Assembly (NCBI RefSeq): GCF_018350175.1
Contig: NC_058382.1
Coordinates: forward strand, 17,794,001-17,858,000
Source of the DNA: Felis catus
Taxonomy: Eukaryota
Length of the DNA stretch: 64,000 bases
Direction: 5' to 3'
The notes under the pieces: model-generated
The model's database searches: none
Told to the model about the DNA's origin: nothing
The model's input: the letters and a program-made list of their open reading frames with translations, nothing else
Translations under genes and position numbers: made by a program
Shown: piece by piece, positions 30,135 through 51,674 of the stretch
How positions within the stretch are numbered: position 1 is the stretch's first letter
Layout: the number at the start of each line of letters is the position of its first letter

Positions 30135-33100
30135 TCATCTGCACAGTTGTTGCAGGATGCCTTGGGCCTGGACCCAGCGCAGCCGCCACTGGGGCAGGGA
30201 CAGGCCCTGGCAGAGCTCCCCGGACAGGGCGGCTTGGCCTGGCTGCTCCCACCTGGGGAAAGGGGACAGTGTCACAGGGAAGGCCCGGGACTCTAGACAC
30301 TCAGTGGCCTCCACACCCCACCCCCCCAACACCTCCTCCCCTGCCTGCACCCCCAGGTCCTGCCCGGTCCACCCAGCTCAGGACCCTGCCCCCACCATCG
30401 TGCCCCCGTCTCACCAGTCCCCAACAACCCCCTGTAGCTCGGGGATTCGCTCCAGCGCTTGTTTCAGCAGGTTCTCCAGCTGCTTCAGAGCCTGTCCCAG
30501 ATTCTCTTTCTGCTCCTTTTCCCGAGCTGCCCGGATCTGTAGCAGCTCTGCAGGTGAGAAACCCAGGAGGCAGTGCTGAGTCCTCTGGCTCCTGGGGTCT
30601 CACAGCCAATGGGTCACCAAGTCTCCAGTCACCTAGTGTTGACCTCACCTCTCCCACACCTCTCCTTCCTCCCACTTCCTCATCTCAAGGGCAAGCCCCC
30701 CATCCCCCAAGCTTCATCCCGGATACCTTCCTCCCTCTAGGACAGACCATCAATCTTCTCGGCCCATCCTTCAGCTTCCTCCCCCTTCCCCCCTTCCCTA
30801 CTCACCCCCCAGCCTCCCTCCTATGCTCCAGGCCTCAGCCTCCAATTCTGGTCCATGCCTCTGGTACATGGCAGCCAGAATGATCTTCCTAAGGCATAAA
30901 CCTGATCCTTTCCCTCTCCTGCATGGAACCCTCCAAGGCCCCCCAGTACCCCCAAGAGAGAGTCTGAGCTCCTCAGGCCAGTACTTGAGGGTTTGCACTA
31001 TGTGACCTCTGCTACTATCAGCCCTCACCTATCCCTCTGGGCCCATTCGAGACACCACTTTCCCCCTGGAAGCCCTTCCCAGCGTTCCCCACCCCAAGGC
31101 TTCCTCCTCAGACTGCTGTAGGTTCACTCCAACAGTGTTGCCCTGGAGACTATGACTGGGTCTAGTCCCTCTCCATAGGCCCAAACAGGCCCATCTCAGA
31201 GCAAGTACAGATCAGCATTGTGGTCAGAGCCCTTGGGCCTGAATCCTGACTCCATTCCATCCTTGCCTTCTGACCTCAGGCATGACATGTGCCCTTTCTT
31301 CAGCCACTTCTGCAGTCAGGTGTAACTGAGCCACAGGCTAGCAGGGCAGGCTGCAGACTGGGGCACTCTGAAGCAGAACCTACAAGGCTTGTTGACAGGT
31401 TGAAGGTGGGGGGGCGGCTTAGGGACCTGGGAGGAATTAGGATGACTCCTGGATTGCTGACCTCAGTAAGGAGGGTGAGGTCACTTTTTGAGGGAAGGAA
31501 ACCAGGCAGAAGAAAAACAAAACTGCTTTTCAGAACAGGGGGAACTATGCTCTGTTACAGACATGCTAAAGCCCAAGATGCCCATGAGGTGCGATGATAC
31601 TGTGCCAGTCTTAGGCTGCTCCCGACACAGCTCCCTGTCACTGGAGGGGGAGGCAGGGAGCCTGAAACTCAAAGGCCCGAAAATGGCCTCTTCCTGCTTT
31701 GCTGATGGCACCTCGGTTCATTTCTCATCAATACACCTCTTCCACCTATTTATCCTTTGATTCTGCGCTCTTTGCTTCTACCGCTGGGACCCTGGGGCTG
31801 GACAGCTCGGGCGTCCTCTCCCCATTGAGCTCGGGGGGCCAGTAGCAACCCAGCAAGTGCTAGCTGAGGGAATCTAGTGATGAACAACTTTTCCGAGTTT
31901 CAGTATTTTCATCTGTAAATTGGTCTTAATAATCTCTACCCTTATGGTAAGGACTGAAAGAGACTCCACATGTGCAGACAAAAAGATCGCAACCACACCA
32001 GAGACGCATAGCGCTTACTGTATGCTGTGCATTGTTCAGTGCCCTGTTTGGGTAACCGGACTGAGTCTTTGCAGCAACTCTGTAAGGTGCTATGATTATG
32101 CTTACTCCACTGAGGAGGAAACTGAGGCACAAAGAGATCACACAGCAGGGAATAGGTAGGGCTAAGAAGAGTTTAACTCCACAGCCTAGCTTTTAACTAC
32201 TCAAGTATCCTATTGGATGGTGATACATGAGAACTTTGCAATTTGACAGGCAGTGTCACCTGGTTAGGAGTACAGACACATGTCAGACTGCCTGGATTTA
32301 AATCCTAGCTCTGCTACCTAAGCAGCCACCAAGGCCTCCTGTCTTAGTTCTTGCCTCTGTAAATGGGGCAAATGGCAGTGCTAACCCCATGGGGCTGCTG
32401 TGCAGATGAAAGCCGTGAACATGCTTAAAGCTGACTCAGCACACAGTAGGCACTGTGTCAGCACTGAGTGTTTGTGATTTCTTCTGGAGGCTGATGGCCC
32501 TGGGAATGGGCAGGAATGCCACTTGTGAAGGCAAGGCCTTACCCTGGGTGGATGGTCCTGGGGGCAGGCTGGTCTTCATGTGGAGCAGATCCCAGGACCG
32601 GAGACTCTGCTGGTCCTGGAGAAACAGAAGTTCCTGACGAAGAGAGGCAGCCTTTGGGAGGAGCAGTTCTGGAGCCTGGAGGGAGGGGGAAGGACAGTCA
32701 TTTTGGGAGGGGGTAGGAGTGGGAAGACAGGTCCTAGGGGACAGAAACTCACCTTCCCTGCAGGCAGCCCCAATCTGTGGCTCAGCACTATGAGGCTGGA
32801 GCTCCTTGGGGATGTGGGATGCAGCTGGTAGATGGATGGCAGGACCGTGGGCAGGGGCTGTAACCTGGAGGGAAAGTCCAGGTTGGGTGGGGCACTGGGA
32901 GGAGGCTTGGGTTCCAGAGGTTCCGGGGGCTGAGAGGTGGGCTCAGGAGGCCCAGGAACTTGGAGGTGGGTCTGGGCACTAGGATTCCGGAGTTAGGACT
33001 GAGGACTTGTGGGCGAGGTCTGGCAGGTTGGGAACACTGGGGGCCTGGGATTATTTTTTTGGAGTAGAATCAGGGAGTGATAGTCATCGGTGGGAGGGGA

Positions 33101-36100
33101 TATAAGGGGTGGCTCCAGTCTTACCCTCCAGGGCTGTGCCGAAGCAAGGTGTCCAACAGAAGGTGGGGAAGATGCCGGGCTTCCTCCTCCAGACAATGAA
33201 GCAGTTTCTGGGACTGTGGTGCCACCGCTTCAGATGTGGGGACCACTTTTCGCTGAAGCAGAGCCAGTACCTGTGGGGAAGGAAAGGGATGGGAAGGGCA
33301 GCCTGGAGCCACCCAGCCCCACCTGTAGGAGCCCTAGCCCTACCCAGACTTTGCCTCAACTCCCGTCTCACCTCTGCAGGGCTCCGGCACAGGCGCGTCT
33401 TGCTGGCTGAGTTGCCTTTGATGAGCAGGCGGATCTGTTCCTGTGTCTCCTCCTGGGTAACCATGAGGCCACTGAGATGGGCTGCTTTTACTTCCTACCT
33501 CCCAGCTTCTGGCCCTGCCTGCCCCTTTGTACAGGTCCTGTTTCCTCTTGGAAGACTCATCCTGGGCCCCTCCCCACCACCAGAGGCCCAGTTCTGGATC
33601 CTAAGGCTCCCAGCCTCTCTCTGGCCCTCCATGCAGCACCCCCACTTCCCCTGAGGCCCGCCTCTCACCACCAGCCGGCGCCAGTGCAGGATCCGTTGCT
33701 GTTTGGCCTGTAGCTCCTGTAGCAGAAGCTGCCGGCGCCCAGCCACCTCCTCCAGCTCCTGGCTCTGAGCACGCAGGGCCTTGAGCTCTGCCCACAGGCC
33801 ACAGCCTCGGAGTCCCAGCACCAATGCCTGCCTGGGGCGCAAGCAGAAGAGGGCAAGGGAGAGGAAGGTGACTAAGACTCATAGTGGAAGAGGGAAATCA
33901 GATCTATGAGGATGCACAAGGAGCCACAAGCACGGACACAAACCAGAAGAGCAGGGAGGCAGAGCTGGGAGCCACAGGGGCAGAAAAAGTCCAGTATTCT
34001 GAGACTTCTGGGAGAGAGATGGCCTAGAGTCTCTGCTGAGAGAGCCCCCTCACCTCTCGCTGGATTCCAGGGCACATTTCTTCACCTCCTCCATCAGGCC
34101 TTGGAGGCGCTGGGTCAGGATTTGATGCTCCTTCAGCAGGGGGCCCCGCTGTGCAATCAGCATACCCACGTCCCGCCAGCCCTCCTGGGGCAGGGGTATA
34201 AAGTCAGGGTGGGTATGATCCCTGGGGGTGAGGGGATTAACTGGGGCTTGGGATGGGAAGGAGATGGAATCCTGGGAAGGATGCCTGGGGGTCACCTGGA
34301 TGAGATGCACCATGGACGGCAGGGCCCGGCTGGAGTCTGGCTGGTCTGGTGCCTGGGACCTGGAGGTGGGATCAAACTGCTGAGGGAGGAGCCCTCTCCC
34401 CTTCCTGAGTTCTCAGGGATGGCCAATGTCAGCCCACCTGCCAGACTGATCATTGGGCTTCAGCTCCATCCCCATCAGCAGGTGGGGATGTGCCACAAGA
34501 CTGTGCCTGGCCCTGAGTCTTCTGGCTTAGCCATCCCCTGGCCCTGCCCCACCCTCAGGAGCACTCCACTTCACACCTGGTTATCTCCGTATCTTGGAGC
34601 CCATCTGGACTGCACAGGGACCGAATCTCTGCCTCCCGCTCCTCAGCCAGGTGCTCCAAGGAGGCCAGGATGTGGCCCGGAGGATGGTTTGTCAGCAGTG
34701 TCTAGTGGGGGGAAGGGTAAAGTAGGGCTGGATGGGTGTAGGGCTGTGAGCTAGGACCCATGGTGATGAGGCAGGGATCAAGAGTTAGGTTCTGGCACCC
34801 TGAGGTTCGCTCATGGGGCAGAAGGTGTGGCCTTTCCTGAAAGCCCCCCTCACCTCCACTGAGCTAAGCCACTGCTGGTAGGAAGCTCCAAAGTGGTCAT
34901 CTCGAGGGGTTCTGCAAGGTTAGGGAAGGGGACAGAGAATATTAGAAGATCATGTCAACACTCCCTCTACTGATTACCACTACCCCTAAGGTGGGGGCTA
35001 TTGTCCCTATTTTAAGGATGAGGAAACCAAGTCCATCAGGAGTCCATGCCTCCTAGACTTGAGTTCCCTGCTTATACCAACTAGCTAGACTTAGGGCCTT
35101 TCACATGTGCTATTTGTCTAGAATACTCTCTTAACCTTTTACCCTCACTAAGCCTCCTCACCAGAGAATCTGTCCTCCCTGACTCCTTAGCTGAGTAGTG
35201 TCTCCTTTGGGTACCTGGAGTTTCTCAGGCTTCCCCGCCTCCAACATCCCTAACCACCCGGTTGTCACTATCTGTGATGGATTTGTCTCTTCCTTGTCCC
35301 AACCTGGGAGCCGTCAGGGCAAGATCTGCAGCTGACATAGTCCAGAGGCTCAGTGGCTGAGGAATTAACAGATAAGTGACTCCCCCCTCAAAGCCCAGGT
35401 TCTTGGCAGGGTCTGTGGGGCCTGGATGACACTCACAGGATGCTGCCTCCCTTGGCCTGAGGAGCTAGGAGGTTCTGCAAAAATTGGGTCCGGAGGGTAC
35501 AGGCTGTTCGGACATCACCCTGGGAAAAAGAGGATGGGGCATGAGAGGAACCCAGACTGACCCACCCACCCACCTGACCCCAGACTCTCCACCTCTTTCC
35601 CCATGGCCCAGGACTCTTACCAGGACCACAGGCTCCAGTCCCAGGGATGCTGATGATAAGGGTCGAAAGGTTATATCTACTGTGGCCTTCCTGGAGAGAA
35701 AAATACAGTTGGGGTGGGGGTCCCTGGGAGAAGAGAGCTAGGAGAACAGATATCTGTGTCTCCTCCTGCTGCAAGGCTAGTTACAGGGATCAGTGAGCCT
35801 GGATCTCAGGGGCCACCTCTAAAATTAGACCACTGTCATCTCCTGGCTGTATTAGCTTCCTCACTGGCCTCTGCTCTTGGCTCCTGTGGTCTGTTTCTAT
35901 CTAGTAGTTAACGATCCTGCTAAAACCTGACACGTCATGTCACCTTTCTGCCCCAAACCCTTGAAAACAGTGTGTTTTCCCACCACATTCAGAATAGCAA
36001 CAGTGGGTATCAGAAACTCTTTTAAGCATTCTGCGTGATTTGACTCATTAATTATCATACTTACCCTATACAGTAGGTTTAACATTATCCCCATTCTACA

Positions 36101-38983
36101 GTGCTTACAAACTGAGGCACAGAGAAGTTAAATCATTTGCCCAAGTTCATAGAGAAGTGGACAAGCTAGGGCATGAACCCAGCCTCAGAGTAAAATTCCG
36201 ATGCTTCCATAGCACTCTGTCCCTGTCTCTGACCTCATCTCATGCTCTCCCTTTTGCCTGTGTAACTTAAGCTGAACTGGCCTCCTGGCTGTTCTTCCCA
36301 CATGCCAAGCTCAGCACCTCTGCTCTTGGTGCCCCTCTCCATGGAGATTCCTCCCCCAACACAAATGTCACCTTCTCAGAAAGGTCTTTTCTGACCATCC
36401 TACCTAGAGCAGCATCTCCCTCTCCCGTTCTCCACACTACCCTTTTTATCATAGCATTTATGTCTCCCTGCAATTATAGAGTTTGCTTCCTAATTTACCA
36501 TCTCTCTCTTCTGCATCAGAGTATAAGATCCATGAGGGCAGGGACTTATCCCTTATTTACTGTTCTTTCCCCAGAACATTCCCTAGGTATACAGCTGGCA
36601 CCATTCTAGGCACTGGAAATGTAAGTGGCTAAGGTGACAAAATTTCTTGGCCTCACAGACTTTAAATCCTAAGGAGTGGAGCTCAGAATTGTGGAACCCA
36701 AGAAGGGGTCAGGGTCTCTAAGGAAAATGTCTGTGCACCTGGCCTGGTGAACGCTGGTCCCTGGGAACCTGAGGCCTACCTCTCTATGTCCTGCAGACGC
36801 TTCAATTGATTCTGTAGCTGCTGCATGGGATCTTGAAGCCCACGCTGCTGTCTTCGCATGGCCCCAGCTTGGGCCCGGAGGAGGAGAGCACGACGCTGGG
36901 TGTCTTGAATGCTCTGCAGGGCCTGCTCCATGGCCATGTCTGTAAGAGAAATGGGGTGGCCATCAGCACTGCTGCTCATCTTCTCAGCCCCCTAGGTCAC
37001 CCTGAGCCTCGGTCTCTCGCTTCATCAGCTCCAGGCTGCTCATCTTCCCAGCCCCATAGGTCACCCTGAGCCTCGGTCTCTTGCTCCATCAGCTCCAGGC
37101 TCTGGTCTAACTCCTGGATCTCTGCCCGCAGGCGAGCAACAGTGGCTTCCAGCTCCAACTTCCGACGGGCCTGGTGGGATCAGGTACAGAGTCAGGTGCA
37201 TGGCCTGGCTGGGGCTTGGCCTGGCTGCCCTTTGTGGAACACCAGTCTCCTCACCTGCACAGGTAGGTGGCAGGGGTTTTTCCTACGCAGTTTCTGTGTC
37301 TGATTCTCTAGGCCCAGAAGAACACTAGGGTACCATCTGTCTTCCTCCTTCCTCCTGGGATTGCCTCACCTATCCTCTTAACCTGTTTCCTGTCTCTGCA
37401 CTGATGATACTACAGCTGTGCCCTAGTTCTCATCTCCCCACGAAGAGCCAAATCTAGGAGTCCCAAGGTCTTCTGGAATCCTCCCCCAGATGTCACCTGG
37501 GCCTCTTGCACACAATAGGTCCTCCATTGGCCTCAGTATATCTCCTAAACCAGTCCCTTCTCCCATCTCCCCTCATCAGCTTTGATGCCTCATATCCACG
37601 TCCCCTCAACATCCAGCTCATGCCTGTCTCCCCTGGACTGTAAGCCCTGAGTGTCGAGATCAGAGCTGGCAGATCAACCCAGCGTCCCCAACATTACACA
37701 ACACGAAGCTGGGCCTAGAGCAGAAATCTACAAATCCTCTTTTTGGATGGAAGAAAATCTTATAATACATGCTTCTCACCTCTGGACTGTCCTGGTGGCC
37801 ATACCTGAGGAAATGGGGCCAGAGTTAGCGGGTGACGGGACTTCCAGGGGGAGACAGGAGGTGTGAGGCTACGGGTGAAAATACAGTTGGATGGGAGTAG
37901 GGAAAATAGGAAGGAATAGCTTTTAGAACCAGTTACCAAAGTAAGTTTCCTCGGATCTTCTTGACATTCCTACAGTGGAGAGGTAGAAGGAAGAAGTGTT
38001 ACTGTGAGGTTTGCCTGTGTCCCCTCCCTTGTCACAGCCTCCCTCATGCAGCCAGGCTCACCTCTGGCTATGCACATGCCGCAAGACATAGGCCCAGATG
38101 TCGGCCCCCTGGCCCAGACACAGTCTGTGGAGACAGTGTGTAAGTGTATGCCTGGGGCATCACAAAGGTTGGGGGATCCTTATTCCCAGGGTGGCAGTGG
38201 TGGGGAAAGTCTTTACTAGGGAATTGTCGCTTCTGGGGCGAATGGGGATGTGTCCACAGTCTTTGGGGTGAGATATTCCTTCCTGGGGAATTCTTGGTCA
38301 CTGAGTTGTGGGCTTTTCACTGGGTGTGGATATTCTCATTCCCTGGGGGGGGGGGGGGGGTGCGGAGATTCCTTTCTCTGGGAGAGGGCTATCGCTGGTC
38401 ACTTCCAGAGGTGGGAGTGGAGAGTATACTGCCAGGAGCTGCTCTCTCATTACCAGATATGGATCATCACCCTTCTAGATTCGGTCTCCAGTGGGGTGGT
38501 CTTTGCTGACCTGGAGTCTCCTCACTGGCTTGGGACGGTAGGGGTGGTAGGTGCTGTAGGGACAGTCTTGCTCCAAAGATCTCACTTCTACATAGTTTGG
38601 GGGCTTTACTAACTCTCAGAGGATCCTCAGTGGTGCCTCGCCCTCACTCTGGGTGGTCTCACGGGGTGGGGGGTGGGAGTGGGGGGGGTGTCTTCACTCA
38701 ATCCGGGATCCTCTTCCCAGATATATTACTGGGTGTGTGGGTGGGTAAGGGGGACGCCCTCGGGGGTTATTCTCATTGGGGCAGAAGTGGGGAAGACGAA
38801 GGAGGGTCTTCAGCGAGGGGTGGGGTTCTCACCCGCGGAGACTACCTCTAAGGTATGGAGTCCTCACTGTCAGAGCGTCCCTCACCTGCGCAGTGTTGAC
38901 TCCGGGGCCCGGGCTGCCGCGGGCGCCCCCATCTCTTCCGCCGCCCAGCAGCCCAGTTCCCGCGCTTCCTGCACTAACTCCAT
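30135..38983 (-). CDS. HAUS5: HAUS augmin-like complex subunit 5; CDS join(38983-38886, 38124-38062, 37969-37937, 37804-37780, 37170-37065, 36939-36780, 35690-35621, 35519-35437, 34911-34854, 34701-34577, 34359-34296, 34184-34054, 33831-33669, 33452-33372, 33270-33125, 32864-32753, 32675-32543, 30547-30415, 30252-30135), 1902 nt, 633 aa
   Basis: Starts [45 protein letters not shown]... and ends ...[39 protein letters not shown]. Nineteen exons, all GT-AG, with cumulative phase closing exactly at 633 aa. Confidence 0.96.
36974..37101. repeat. Two-copy 64-bp tandem duplication spanning the HAUS5 exon 5 / intron 5 junction
   Basis: 36974-37037 vs 37038-37101, 60/64 identical. Confidence 0.95.
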
Positions 38984-47390: not shown

Positions 47391-48750
47391 CTAAGGATTT
47401 TAAGAAGCAAGTGGGGGTTCTCTAGTCTCTCATCTGCCTAGGTTCAGAAGACTCTAAGCACTTATGATGGTGGAATTACCAAGTGGAAGGAGCCTGGATC
47501 CCTAACTTAATATGTGGGCAACCAGAAATGCCCACTTTGGGAGGTTCTTTAAGTGTGAAGTAAGCTATTTTGTGAGCTACTGAAATGGTGGGGTTTATTT
47601 GTTACAGCCACTGGCATAACTCTAAACAATATACTCCTAGACCTCATTCTAGCTTAGTGTACCTCAAACTATTTGTGGTTGCAGAGTAGGACTCATTTTT
47701 TGATATCTCCAAAATGTCATGTACAGATAGATTCTTTTGGTCTATGTCCTGTCCAATAAGACAAGTCTGTTGATTCTATTGTTGGATGTCACGGCCATGT
47801 CAAATTTCTGTGAGTTTTGAACTGCTTATTGGAAATTTCTGCACTTAATCTTGTTGCAGACCATCAACAGAAGTGAACCACTAGTGGCACTGCTTTAGCT
47901 TATTGCCCTATTTGATTTCTCTCCTTATCATTTACCACTCCCTGTAATTATCTTATTTACTTAGAGGTCTATTTGTTTATGGTTCTTCCCAGTAGAATGT
48001 AAGCTCCTTCAGAAAGGAGACTTATCTTGCTCTGTTGAATCTCCAGCTCCTAGTACAGTGCCTGATAAGTCATAGGTGCTAAGAAATTATTTGTTGAATT
48101 ATGAATAAATGACAAGCTTTGGTGGTGAGGGGGGACACGAGGCCATCATAACTGTAACAGAAGCTCTCTACAATTGTAACTTGACCTGAATTCTTATCAG
48201 TTCACTGACAGCTGCTTGACTTCCTGGCTTTCTGGTAGACCACAAGTACCCAAGATTAGGTCAGGCCTCTTACAACCGTCCTCTCTAGGTTCACCCTACT
48301 AGAGATTAGACTGCACTGAACTATCACTCTCTGATGATATGTCTATCTTTACCTGATTTATAAGTTCTGAGAGGGGTGTGGTTGGATCTGAAGTGGTCAC
48401 TGCTGTATCTCCAGAGTCAGGTTGCAGAGCTAAGGTCCTTGGCATGAACAGATTTATGACATGAATGCATGATGTGAGCAGGAGGGGAGACTTCCCTGGG
48501 GAAACAGTGGCATACCCTGCCTCCATGGCCCCCATCCCTTGGCAAGATCCCAGGGTTGGTCCTGAAGGTCCAGTGGGCTGCCCAATCTGCCCCTTTCTTG
48601 CCCCATCAACTACCTCAAGGTGCTGGCTCAGGCTGTCAACAGTTGGCAACCAGACATTTTGGAACAGGTGTCCCATTTGGCCCAAATGGATACTTACAGC
48701 CAAGGTATGTAACACTGTTATATATTTCTAGTGGTTTGCTGAAAAGGAGG

Positions 48751-50312
48751 TTAACGAGAAAATAAGTCCACCATGAGGAAAATCAAGATGGCGAGTGTGA
48801 TGATGCTTCCCAAGACAATCCCCAAGACTGCCATGTAGTAGACTTGCTGGGACGTCTCAGCTGCCAAGGCTCGGTTATTCCACTTGTTGCTGTGCCTTAT
48901 CTGATTAGAGGGGAGAGGCAGGACAGGAATAGTTGGCTTCAGTGGGTTATTGTAATGGGTGAGCTATGGGACTGTAAGGACCCAGGTGGGGATGTGAGCC
49001 CACAGGAGGGACAAAAGAAAGAATTTGAGTCAGGGTCAAGGCCAGGATGAAAAGGAAAGGAGGAGAGGATTAGCCTGATGCAGATTCCCACCTGGAAAGA
49101 GAAGATCAAGGCTACAATGCCTATGGGAAAACACAGGAGTAAGTCACAAATGGACAGGCACATGTGGTCTCTGGGGGGCTTGTCCTGCAAAATTTCAAAC
49201 TCCTGTGGGGAGGGAGTGGGTTATGGCTCAGTATGGCTTCTGTACTGTGCTGTCCCCTCTGACTCCTTTTCAAGACATTTGGCTGTATAGATTCTTCTTT
49301 GATCTCCTTAAAAACTCTTACCAACCCCTTCTAACTCCTACCATGTGCCCTCTAATCTGTTCTTATTCCAATACCTCCTTCTAGCTGGATCTCCCAGCAT
49401 CCCTCCACCCCTATGCTCTATCATCCCTGCCCATTCCCTGTCTCCTGTAACCTTTCCCTGTCTTCTATAACTGCCTTCAGGTCCCTACAGCATGTCTCAC
49501 TTGGCCCCTAACACCACCCCCACAAAACCCCTTACTGACTCTGATGACTCTCACTTGTCCTTCGTGAAACCTCAACTGAGTCGTTAACAAACTCTGTTCC
49601 TATAACACCCTCATGGTCCTCCCAAAGAAGCCTTCTTTTTGCCCCTATGAATCACCCTAATAAGAAGACCCCTACTCAACACTTGAACACTCTCACTTTC
49701 CATCTGTGAAACCTCCCTTGTTCCCTCATAAAACTCTTACCCTATAAAACTGTGAATGTCTCCAATAGCTCTCTCCTTATCCCACTTGTAATATCCCTCA
49801 CTTTGTCCCCATGAACCTGTCGTGGTCCTGTTATGAGCCTTACTGTTCGCCCATAAACTGCTCTCTTCCCCTTCCCCCCACCCATTACCTCTCTGTTGGC
49901 TCCTCTTAAGACCTTCTTTGACCAACTCTAAACTCTAAGTCCTCTCCCTGTCATAGTCTCATAGCCTCTTTTTGTCCTCTTATAAAGGCCTGCCCTTTCT
50001 CCCTCTACCACCTTCTCTCCACCTCTGAAACCAGCGTCCTGACCCTCTGAACCTCTCCTTCCTCCACTCATAGCAGCCTCCCTGTTCTCCTAAACCAGTG
50101 TTCCCTCTAAATAGTTCTCTTCTTATAACACCCCCTCTGCCTCCTGAAACCCTTCTTGCTCCCTCATTCTGCCGCTACCCATGCTTTCTCCCACCCTATC
50201 CCCCGTAAATTCCCTCCCTGCCCCTTCAAACACCTCCCATCAGGGCATCTGGATCTGGGTACAAGGGGGCTCTCCCTCACTCCAACCCGCCATGGGTTAC
50301 CGTGGAGACCAT
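48751..50312 (-). CDS. Small CD225/dispanin-family membrane protein (PMIS2-region paralogue or divergent PMIS2 orthologue); CDS join(50312-50301, 49202-49092, 48900-48751), 273 nt, 90 aa
   Basis: MVST|EFEILQDKPPRDHMCLSICDLLLCFPIGIVALIFSFQ|IRHSNKWNNRALAAETSQQVYYMAVLGIVLGSIITLAILIFLMVDLFSR*. Acceptors CCCCACAG|GAG (49202) and CTAATCAG|ATA (48900), donors ACG|GTAACC and CAG|GTGGGA, all phase 0. Kozak AGCATGG. Exons 2-3 are well supported; exon 1 is inferred. Confidence 0.8.
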
Positions 50313-50339
50313 GCTGGACCCGCCTCCTCTCTTGCCTTT

Positions 50340-50460
50340 CTATTACTATAGGCTGATTGGAGGTTGTCTGTGATAGGGTGGGGAATCCAACACTCATGTG
50401 GCTACTGATTGGTCTGAAGGAGTGCAAGCTCTTCCTACTCTCTTAGGTGATTGGTCAATT
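50340..50460 (-). promoter_or_regulatory. Candidate promoter of the CD225-family gene with three CCAAT boxes
   Basis: TGATTGG (CCAATCA on minus) at 50354-50360, 50406-50412 and 50448-50454, immediately upstream of the ATG at 50312. Confidence 0.6.
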
Positions 50461-51674
50461 CTGGGAGTTGCTTTTTATTACAGTTTAGTTTTGAAGGTGA
50501 TTTATATATTTTGGATAGAAGTCCTTTCTCAGGTATGTGATTCGCAAATGTTTTCTCTGGGTCTGGAGATTATCTTTTTTGTTTTCCAACAATGTCATTT
50601 GCAGAGCAAAGTTTTTAATTTATATTAAGCCCAAATTATTTTTTAATTTTATTTCATGGACGTCCTTTTGGTGTCATGTCTAAGAATCTCTTCTTAATAC
50701 AGTGTCAGGAAGATTTTCTCCTATGTTTTCTTCTAAGTGTGTGATAGGCTTACATTTTATATTTAGATCAATGATCCATATTGAGTTCATTATTTTATAA
50801 GAGGTGAGGTTTTAGATGAGATGATGATGATGATGATTTTCATTTAGTTTTTCAATTAATTAACACCATAAAAAAAAACCTGTTCGTTCTCTGATAAGTT
50901 GCACTGGCCTTCGTTTGAAAGTAAATTGGTTGTAATTAGCACCATTAAAAAAAACACCAAAAAACCTGTTTGTTCTCTGGTAAGTTGCACTGGCCTTCGT
51001 TTGAAAATAAATTGGATATATATATCTGTATATATCCAGAAAGATATATATATCCATCCAATTTATTTTCAAACGAAGTCCATATATATGTATATATGGG
51101 TCTCTTTCTGGACTTTTTATTCTGTTCTGTTGATCAGTGTGTCTGTTCCTTTGCAAATACCATGTTCTCTTATAATGTAGCTTTATAGTGATTCTAAAAA
51201 TTGAATGAGTATTCCAACTTCATTCTTCTTTCACAGAATTATTTTGACTCTGCTTGTATAGATCTACAAATCTTGCTGGTCCTTTAATAGGAATTGCATT
51301 AGAATTTCAGATCAATTTTAGGAGAGACATTGAGCCTCCATTTCACTGTAATTGGGAGCCTCTCCATTTATTTAGTTTTTTTTCTTTATTTTTTTCAGCA
51401 GCTGCAGTTTAAACACATGGCTGATGCACATAATAGTTTAGATTTATGCCTAACTACTTGCTTTGTGGGGCTATTGAAAATGGTATTATGATTATCATTT
51501 TTTGCTAGCTGTTATTTATTTTTATTTACTATTTTGATGGAACTATAATTAACGTAGTGTTATATTAGTTTCAGGTGTACAATGTAATGATTCAACAATT
51601 CTATATATTACTTAGTGCTCATCAAGATAAGTGTATTCTTAATCCCCTTTATTTATTTAAATTTATTTATTTAT

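Follow-up and report, generated by a model that had tools for sequence, protein, structure and literature searches.

We analysed a stretch of 64,000 nucleotides (nt) of the genome of the cat, Felis catus (G000:C39:17794001-17858000), which we call the window, and in it a small gene at positions 50312-48751 of the minus strand, which we named gene A. Our results showed that gene A is a true gene of the CD225/dispanin family and that it is transcribed and spliced correctly. They also showed that, in three felids, the start codon that is intact in wolverine, bat and deer is put out of frame by the insertion of a single nucleotide. We think, with a probability of about 0.55, that gene A of the cat is a decaying or N-terminally truncated member of a dispanin cluster linked to PMIS2, with a disabled start, and that its coding function is being lost or has been lost. 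The protein of 90 residues that can be assembled from the DNA is probably not what the cat makes.

Transcripts and start codon of gene A

The gene had been outlined beforehand from the DNA letters alone. This original prediction joined three exons, of which the first translates as MVST, the second as 37 residues with the lead-in peptide FEILQDKPPR, and the third as 49 residues, including the loop peptide ALAAETSQQVYY, plus a stop. Every boundary of this model on the minus strand is a canonical GT/AG site. The coordinates of these and the other features are shown in Table 1. The second and third exons and the junction between them were borne out by the transcripts of three runs, but the first exon was not, and a donor at 50234 was seen in place of that at 50301.

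The transcript data consisted of the contigs of one run from each of four studies (X1, X2, X6 and X13) over positions 48300-50600. The runs were typed as RNA by guess only; the spliced contigs themselves show transcripts. The exact joint 48900/49092, at which 191 bases are skipped with CT..AC on the plus strand, was present in contigs of X1, X2 and X6, that is, in three studies. Thus the RNA is shown to be spliced. On the 3' side, the spliced contig of X1 extends to 48563 and that of X2 to 48587. X2 also has a contig that retains intron 1, and X13 contributes an unspliced piece.

As for the 5' exon, a contig of X6 joins exon 2 (49202) to position 50234 (joint 49193->50225, with the cut at +9 giving CT..AC), and a loose end of X1 at 49204 matches 50236-50249. 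Thus the donor at 50234/50233 is backed by two studies. The joint 50301/49202, which the MVST exon needs, was found in no contig of the four runs. The X6 contig stops at 50286 and is followed by Illumina adapter sequence, which suggests that the 5' end of the transcript lies downstream of the MVST ATG.

Table 1. Positions of the parts of gene A, of its 5' region and of two neighbouring CD225 genes (window positions, except those given for C39).
Feature	Position	Strand	Remarks
CCAAT box	50356..50360	-	Promoter-like block kept in cat, fishing cat, cheetah, wolverine, bat and deer
12-nt exon 1 as drawn by the original prediction and NCBI	50301..50312	-	ATG GTC TCC ACG, then GT; MVST
5' exon as observed	50234..50286 (5' limit at least 50286)	-	Donor GGGAG/GTGTTT at 50234/50233
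Ancestral start codon	50238..50240	-	In felids ATG GGA G/GA GTT TGA, that is, MGGV and stop; out of frame
Felid-specific 1-nt insertion (A)	50235	-	Frameshifts the ancestral start
Exon 2	49092..49202	-	FEIL-x-D-x-PP[KR]D[HY] lead-in and first CD225 hydrophobic segment; AG/GT boundaries kept in 6 species
Reference-only nonsynonymous differences in exon 2	49201 (E5 vs A), 49144 (D24 vs A), 49097 (F40 vs L)	-	4/4 runs differ from the window
Met18	49151-49149	-	First in-frame ATG of the observed transcript, within exon 2
Exon 3, coding part	48751..48900	-	Polar loop RHSNKWNNRALAAETS, second hydrophobic segment, TAA stop (kept in 6 species)
3' untranslated region (UTR), minimum extent	48300..48750	-	Spliced X6 contig unbroken from 48900 to 48300 and further
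Cat PMIS2 orthologue	C39:17859620-17860214 (L001:1620-2214)	-	Two exons, 1.6 kb past the window end; passes Pfam CD225
Gene C	C39:17884713-17885353 (L002:4713-5353)	+	Third CD225 gene; two exons, intact, about 25 kb beyond PMIS2

The 5' region of gene A is conserved from cat to bat and deer, and we infer from this conservation that the block with the CCAAT box may act as a promoter. The MVST ATG at 50312 lies only 44 nt downstream of the CCAAT box. In Myotis this ATG reads GTG, and the GT of the MVST donor reads GC in Myotis and deer. The MVST exon probably sits upstream of the transcription start. If exon 1 runs on to 50234, the ATG at 50312 opens only an upstream open reading frame (uORF) of 11 codons, MVSTVTHGGLE and stop. 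The 12-nt exon is probably an annotation rescue that closes the frame, made by the gene predictor and the original prediction alike, and not the main 5' exon.

In Gulo (L004), Myotis (L007) and deer (L003), the sequence ATG GGG stands directly before the conserved donor GTGTTTGA, so that the ATG stands 6 nt ahead of this donor; its context has an A at -3 and a G at +4. In these species with an intact start, the residues MG joined to exon 2 and exon 3 give an open reading frame (ORF) of 88 amino acids (aa), which agrees with the wolverine model P0007. The inserted nucleotide at 50235 is absent from all three, and it is present in the cat window, in Prionailurus (L005), in Acinonyx (L006) and in the spliced contigs. 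The old start of cat, fishing cat and cheetah is now a dead-end ORF of four codons. With the observed splice, a TGA stands in frame two codons upstream of exon 2, and the longest ORF that begins with an ATG is therefore one of 73 aa from Met18. The observed exon also holds short upstream ATGs at 50248 and 50240.

Two side observations concern these transcripts and orthologues. In runs X7 and X10-X12, which come from one study of gut-metagenome metatranscriptomic RNA, 80-100% of the sampled words of exon 3 and the 3' UTR were present. This hints that the transcript occurs in gut-derived material, with DNA carry-over as a possible source. In Myotis davidii (KB108102.1; L007:10001-30704), the annotation fuses exon 3 of gene A to a retro-copy of RPS2, and the product is labelled "40S ribosomal protein S2". 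In this species the ATG GGG start is intact, and so are the two CD225 exons.

Membership of the CD225/dispanin family, which had been predicted, was confirmed by the Pfam profile CD225 (PF04505; gathering cut-off, 27.1 bits). The 90-aa product (P0001) scored 50.6 bits over profile positions 1-67 of 68, exon 2 by itself scored 33.7 bits, and the 73-aa form from Met18 scored 38.3 bits. The expected two hydrophobic segments around a polar loop appeared as Kyte-Doolittle peaks centred at residues 25-35 and 69-81, with the minimum at residue 52 in the loop. The intron between the two segments is also that of the family: it is in phase 0, and gene A has it at profile position 35-37, as does every one of the 16 spliced CD225 genes of the cat. 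The lack of the IFITM3 GxxxG motif in the loop was likewise confirmed, as the alignment sets NKWNNRALA of gene A against MVGDVIGAQ of the cat IFITMs. Of the cysteines beside the first segment, where dispanins are S-palmitoylated, C19 and C28 are invariant among the orthologues of gene A, and C23 is variable.

The AlphaFold model, built on an alignment of nine sequences and of moderate confidence (mean predicted local distance difference test score, 67.8), has helices at residues 18-27, 29-47 (with a kink at Pro30) and 51-89. Such a helical hairpin is not a diagnostic fold. The ESM Atlas gave only generic IFITM/CD225 cluster names with scores <0.9, and the structural neighbours were unspecific bacterial helical hairpins.

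Contrary to the original prediction, the gene is not hidden. A word-based protein search found the identical 90-aa protein as XP_044902779.1, "SYNDIG1-like [Felis catus]", and the same NCBI model exists in Prionailurus viverrinus and Acinonyx jubatus. That is, gene A is already in RefSeq under an automatic and misleading name. Among the cat paralogues, the best non-self matches of exon 2 are SYNDIG1L (53%) and SYNDIG1 (45%), over about 32 residues, and this likeness explains the automatic name. In the library of papers that was searched, gene A is described nowhere, whether under its accession, its locus name or its topic.

Constraint and alleles in felids

Exons 2 and 3, the AG/GT/AG sites and the TAA stop are intact in 6/6 species of three orders. 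We estimated omega, the ratio of nonsynonymous to synonymous substitution rates, between species. The values between orders were 0.31-0.52 for pairs of deer, wolverine and felid (p = 0.001-0.04), and 0.5-0.8 for wolverine and felids paired with Myotis. For the 13 codons before Met18, omega was 0.07-0.3 between non-felid species (p about 0.004 in three pairs). Because these codons are constrained, we conclude that the lead-in is translated where the start is intact. On the felid lineage, parsimony gave 14 nonsynonymous and 3 synonymous changes, with an omega of about 1.3 that is not different from neutral. The wolverine branch carried 4 nonsynonymous and 5 synonymous changes (omega about 0.23), and between non-felid orders omega was 0.3-0.5.

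The reference assembly of the cat differs from the transcripts in exon 2 at residues 5, 24 and 40 (Table 1), where the other felids read A, A and L. Contigs of X1, X2 and X6 showed zero differences from the window over about 600 nt of exon 3 and the 3' UTR, against three in the 111 nt of exon 2. The cluster of E5, D24 and F40 could be a private haplotype, a sign of relaxed constraint or a small conversion tract. D24 is the Asp in the first hydrophobic segment which the original prediction had listed as a feature of the gene. It is not one, because four runs and the other felids read Ala at this residue; D24 is a derived allele of this assembly only, and it places a charge within a membrane segment.

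Relatives of gene A and the locus of PMIS2

An exhaustive profile search of 1.84 billion representatives returned 283 CD225 proteins at E<0.001, nine of them below 1e-10. The groups described here were defined from those nine together with a profile word search and cluster look-ups. Type A, to which gene A belongs, was found in three felids, wolverine and ferret, red deer and goat, and Myotis. A second group, A-prime, is present in wolverine and ferret (P0010, P0157), horse (P0017, P0021), and goat and sheep (P0008, P0156), where its members are named "SYNDIG1-like" or are unnamed; the sheep and goat models chain two or three units that resemble exon 2. Type C comprises proteins named "TMEM233-like" by NCBI in slow loris (P0013), mole (P0020), armadillo (P0165) and mouse lemur (P0166), as well as gene C of the cat. 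True PMIS2 was found in many orders.

In primates, A-like sequences were seen only as read-through models, named "PMIS2 isoform X1" or "PMIS2-like", of orangutan and baboon. These models (Pongo P0009, Papio P0161/P0014) are hybrids in which exons of PMIS2 run on into an A-like CD225 gene that lies downstream (FELMSDEDESSDYLCLSIL...). These searches found neither a separate human A-like protein nor an A-type protein of rodents. The human "PMIS2 isoform 2" was considered as an A-type product and rejected, since it is plain PMIS2 with a splice insertion. Among the proteins that NCBI names PMIS2, there is also one of 197 aa in the frog Eleutherodactylus coqui (P0023; L008:10001-14445). Its first segment (KDYMCFSILSLFLCFPLG) is A-like, and its score with the A profile is 51 bits; the 10-kb flanks of its gene contain no neighbour.

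The location of gene A near HAUS5, as predicted, was confirmed. The HAUS5 exons lie at about 30,411-38,135 of the window on the minus strand, and gene A lies 10.6 kb upstream on the same strand, likewise in two other felids. The claim that gene A is a paralogue distinct from PMIS2, and a second dispanin in a small local cluster, also held. A scan of the whole cat genome for CD225 exons found two further exon pairs near gene A. One is the cat PMIS2 orthologue, about 16 kb upstream of gene A, and the other is gene C. Cat PMIS2 has a long Ala/Pro-rich N-terminus, the first segment APNYLCLTI and the loop NSEWE-AY-NSGRTGW, and over the domain it is identical to PMIS2 of Leopardus geoffroyi; felid PMIS2 scores 54.6 bits on CD225. 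Gene C is very divergent, with FFFFILLAIP in place of CCFP-x-G and the longest branch of its clade. In the wolverine, a copy of A-prime lies 9 kb upstream of gene A (L004:264-721, contig CYRY02029290.1). A search of the cat genome found no A-prime copy and no second copy of gene A. The copy number at the locus thus varies by lineage, A-prime being present in mustelids, horse, goat and sheep and absent from the cat.

A tree was then calculated from 75 columns of a local-profile alignment, which held the domains of all 16 intron-containing CD225 genes of the cat, the genes of the locus and named outgroups. The PMIS2 clade (support 100/98) holds the cat gene of L001 and excludes gene A. Gene A also lies outside the IFITM clade (100/97) and outside the clade of SYNDIG1, SYNDIG1L and TMEM91 (97/93), which is formed by three cat genes and the SYNDIG1L of the bilby. 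We take two of these cat genes to be SYNDIG1 and SYNDIG1L from a motif cited in the original prediction, which occurs verbatim at C10:49.17 Mb, and from their clustering with the bilby SYNDIG1L named by NCBI; the third is presumably TMEM91, a name we assigned from its own motif alone. Gene A and A-prime form a clade of their own (96/96), within which omega between A and A-prime is near 1, and type C forms another (82/81). Gene A thus belongs to the CD225 family, but to none of its PMIS2, SYNDIG/TMEM91 and IFITM subfamilies. The likeness to SYNDIG1 and TMEM91 that the original prediction had seen therefore stands for exon 2, which is closest to SYNDIG1 and SYNDIG1L among the cat paralogues, but it does not extend to the tree.

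The 75 columns did not resolve the backbone of the tree. In approximately unbiased (AU) tests, a single origin of all genes of the locus (p = 0.33), a position of A and A-prime as sister group of the SYNDIG clade, that is, subfamily C (p = 0.39), and a grouping of A with the primate A-like genes (p = 0.41) were neither shown nor rejected. Forcing A together with PMIS2 alone cost 7.4 log-likelihood units (lnL), which is marginal (AU p = 0.067).

Gene A can be compared with the better-known members of the family as follows. PMIS2 is a sperm membrane protein with a CD225 domain; the knockout males of the mouse are sterile, and the CD225 homology was noted by Yamaguchi et al. (PMC3395656). Gene A and PMIS2 share the Pfam family, the locus, the strand and the phase-0 intron, and both are small, lack GxxxG in the loop and evolve fast. 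In contrast to gene A, PMIS2 has the long N-terminus and the loop described above, two coding exons and an FPP-x-G first segment. The lead-in of gene A is short (FEIL-D-PPKDH), its first segment reads CFPIG and its loop RHSN-WNNRALAAETS, and the gene stands in a separate clade. A-prime resembles gene A in its exon structure, FEI lead-in and AAETS loop motif, but the two are only about 39% identical and A-prime has an LCCP-x-G first segment. Proteins of type C, with 82-91 aa, are small bare-domain proteins like that of gene A and lie at or near the same locus in the cat, but they form their own clade, and the cat copy is on the opposite strand and has lost the CCFP-x-G motif.

In dispanins, the loop holds a splice site that is conserved and places the two hydrophobic segments on different exons, and subfamily C (SYNDIG1, SYNDIG1L and TMEM91) has an additional exon for a long N-terminal region (PMC3282796). 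Gene A shares the motifs PPRDH-x-x-LS and C-F-x-P-x-GI with this subfamily, but it lacks both the long N-terminal region and the TNKA-x-AKGD loop. Its ancestral 5' exon codes for only two codons, and the whole protein has 88-90 aa. With IFITM1/2/3, gene A shares the CD225 domain, an equivalent intron (AYSVK/SRDRK in cat IFITM, FSFQ/IRHSN in gene A) and a Cys adjacent to the site where the palmitoylated CC pair lies. In contrast to them, it lacks GxxxG, belongs to a different clade and lies outside the IFITM locus (C21:113.97-115.26 Mb). The GxxxG motif is needed by IFITM3 and PRRT2 for oligomerisation and function, which in IFITM3 is restriction (PMC7665892).

Interpretation of the felid gene and of the cluster

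We consider that gene A may have come to its present state as follows. It belongs to a small tandem cluster of CD225 genes of placental mammals that includes PMIS2. The ancestral gene, like that of wolverine, bat and deer today, would have had a 5' exon ending in ATG GGG, an exon 2 coding for the lead-in and a kinked helix, and an exon 3 coding for the loop and a transmembrane helix, and its product of 88 aa would have consisted of hardly anything but the CD225 domain. Judging from IFITM3, PRRT2 and PMIS2, this product may be a membrane helical hairpin that modulates trafficking, fusion or the stability of a partner, and presumably it would not act through oligomerisation of the IFITM3 GxxxG type. 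A germ-line role is suggested by the linkage with PMIS2 alone. In felids, the insertion of one nucleotide in codon 2 then threw the ancestral start out of frame. The old donor is still spliced, so that the message opens with a dead-end ORF of four codons, and the coding exons would have drifted since then at a roughly neutral rate, the reference cat having acquired an Asp in a membrane segment. The product of the cat would at best be the 73 aa from Met18. The felid-wide frameshift of the start and the neutral-looking evolution of the felid gene undercut the proposal that gene A works in felids as an antiviral factor or a regulator of membrane fusion.

Several points weigh against this interpretation. 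Exons 2 and 3 are still open in three felids, although a frame of only 258 nt would seldom be broken by neutral drift within some 10 million years. The contrast of nonsynonymous and synonymous changes between felids and wolverine was not significant (Fisher p = 0.078), and a felid omega near 1 could reflect positive selection instead. A minor isoform with the donor at 50301 is possible, as contigs show presence and not absence, and the NCBI model may rest on other reads. The transcripts assemble in several small runs, which is unusual, though known, for a dead gene. Translation could also restart behind the uORF of four codons, and Met18 is conserved.

The last point leads to a reading in which the cat gene is functional, namely that leaky scanning, or reinitiation behind the uORF, yields a minimal CD225 protein of 73 aa that begins at Met18 and lacks the lead-in. 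Met18 is invariant in all orthologues of gene A, the 73-aa piece passes Pfam CD225 with both hydrophobic segments kept, and the message with its intact exons 2 and 3 and splice sites is transcribed and spliced. The context of Met18, however, is weak (CACATGT), the ATGs at 50248 and 50240 precede it, the lost lead-in is the most constrained part in the other species, and the felid changes look neutral. We regard this reading as possible but doubtful. We find it quite improbable that the 90-aa MVST product is the true one, that is, that felids exchanged the lost start for the ATG at 50312 and a new donor at 50301. The ATG, the GT donor and the phase 0 are indeed present in three felids, for which NCBI predicts the model, but the same sequence is present in the wolverine, which uses the downstream ATG. 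Moreover, the joint that this product needs was seen in none of the contigs while that from 50234 was seen in two runs, the ATG lies close to the CCAAT box and upstream of the adapter-marked end of the X6 contig, and an exon continued to 50234 yields only the 11-codon uORF.

Two further readings have practically no credence with us. That gene A is itself the one-to-one PMIS2 orthologue of the cat would suit its CD225 domain and its position in the HAUS5-side part of the reported PMIS2 interval (PMC11011635), but the true orthologue lies upstream, the well-supported PMIS2 clade excludes gene A, and forcing the two together carries the likelihood cost given above. Equally negligible is the reading that gene A is a chance ORF or an untranscribed pair of pseudo-exons. 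Only the small size of the exons speaks for it, while the Pfam score above the cut-off, the spliced contigs from three studies, and the intact orthologues in six species of three orders with omega <1 speak against it.

One further result concerns PMIS2. PMIS2 is the SMA20 of the pig, and its de novo birth in the Atp4a-Haus5 interval of placental mammals was proposed in 2024, in a paper that uses neither "CD225" nor "paralog" (PMC11011635). The CD225 domain of PMIS2 and its up to three inconsistently named CD225 neighbours bear on this claim. In the cat, PMIS2 has CD225 paralogues as its neighbours, and a type-C gene is annotated in armadillo as well. An origin of PMIS2 through duplication inside a family that already existed fits this better than a de novo birth does, although the tree is no proof that the genes of the cluster share one local origin. 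We further offer a wider speculation, which we hold to be rather unlikely as a whole. In it, PMIS2 would not have arisen de novo but would have diverged within a tandem cluster of bare-CD225 genes (A, A-prime, C and PMIS2) between HAUS5 and ATP4A. The cluster would be old and would evolve fast, its copies being gained, fused by read-through or lost in one lineage or another. In gamete membranes, gene A would assist PMIS2 as a partner or serve as its back-up, and the frameshifted start would make the cat a natural knock-down that keeps the 73-aa form.

For practical purposes, studies of the locus, such as knockouts or work on the primate read-through "PMIS2 isoforms", may touch more than one gene. 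In the cat, the RefSeq model of 90 aa calls for caution, as it rests on a 12-nt exon without contig support. Felid gene A looks like a case of early-stage loss, and it represents no new kind of biology.

Finally, a near-repeat was observed at the borders of intron 1. The first 9 nt of the intron (GTGTTTGAA) almost repeat the first 9 nt of exon 2 (GAGTTTGAA), at 50225-50235 and 49194-49204 of the window, and the same is seen in the wolverine. This likeness suggests that exon 1 may derive from a partial duplicate of the start of exon 2. The exon-2-like units chained in the sheep and goat models each start with (V/A)FEI.

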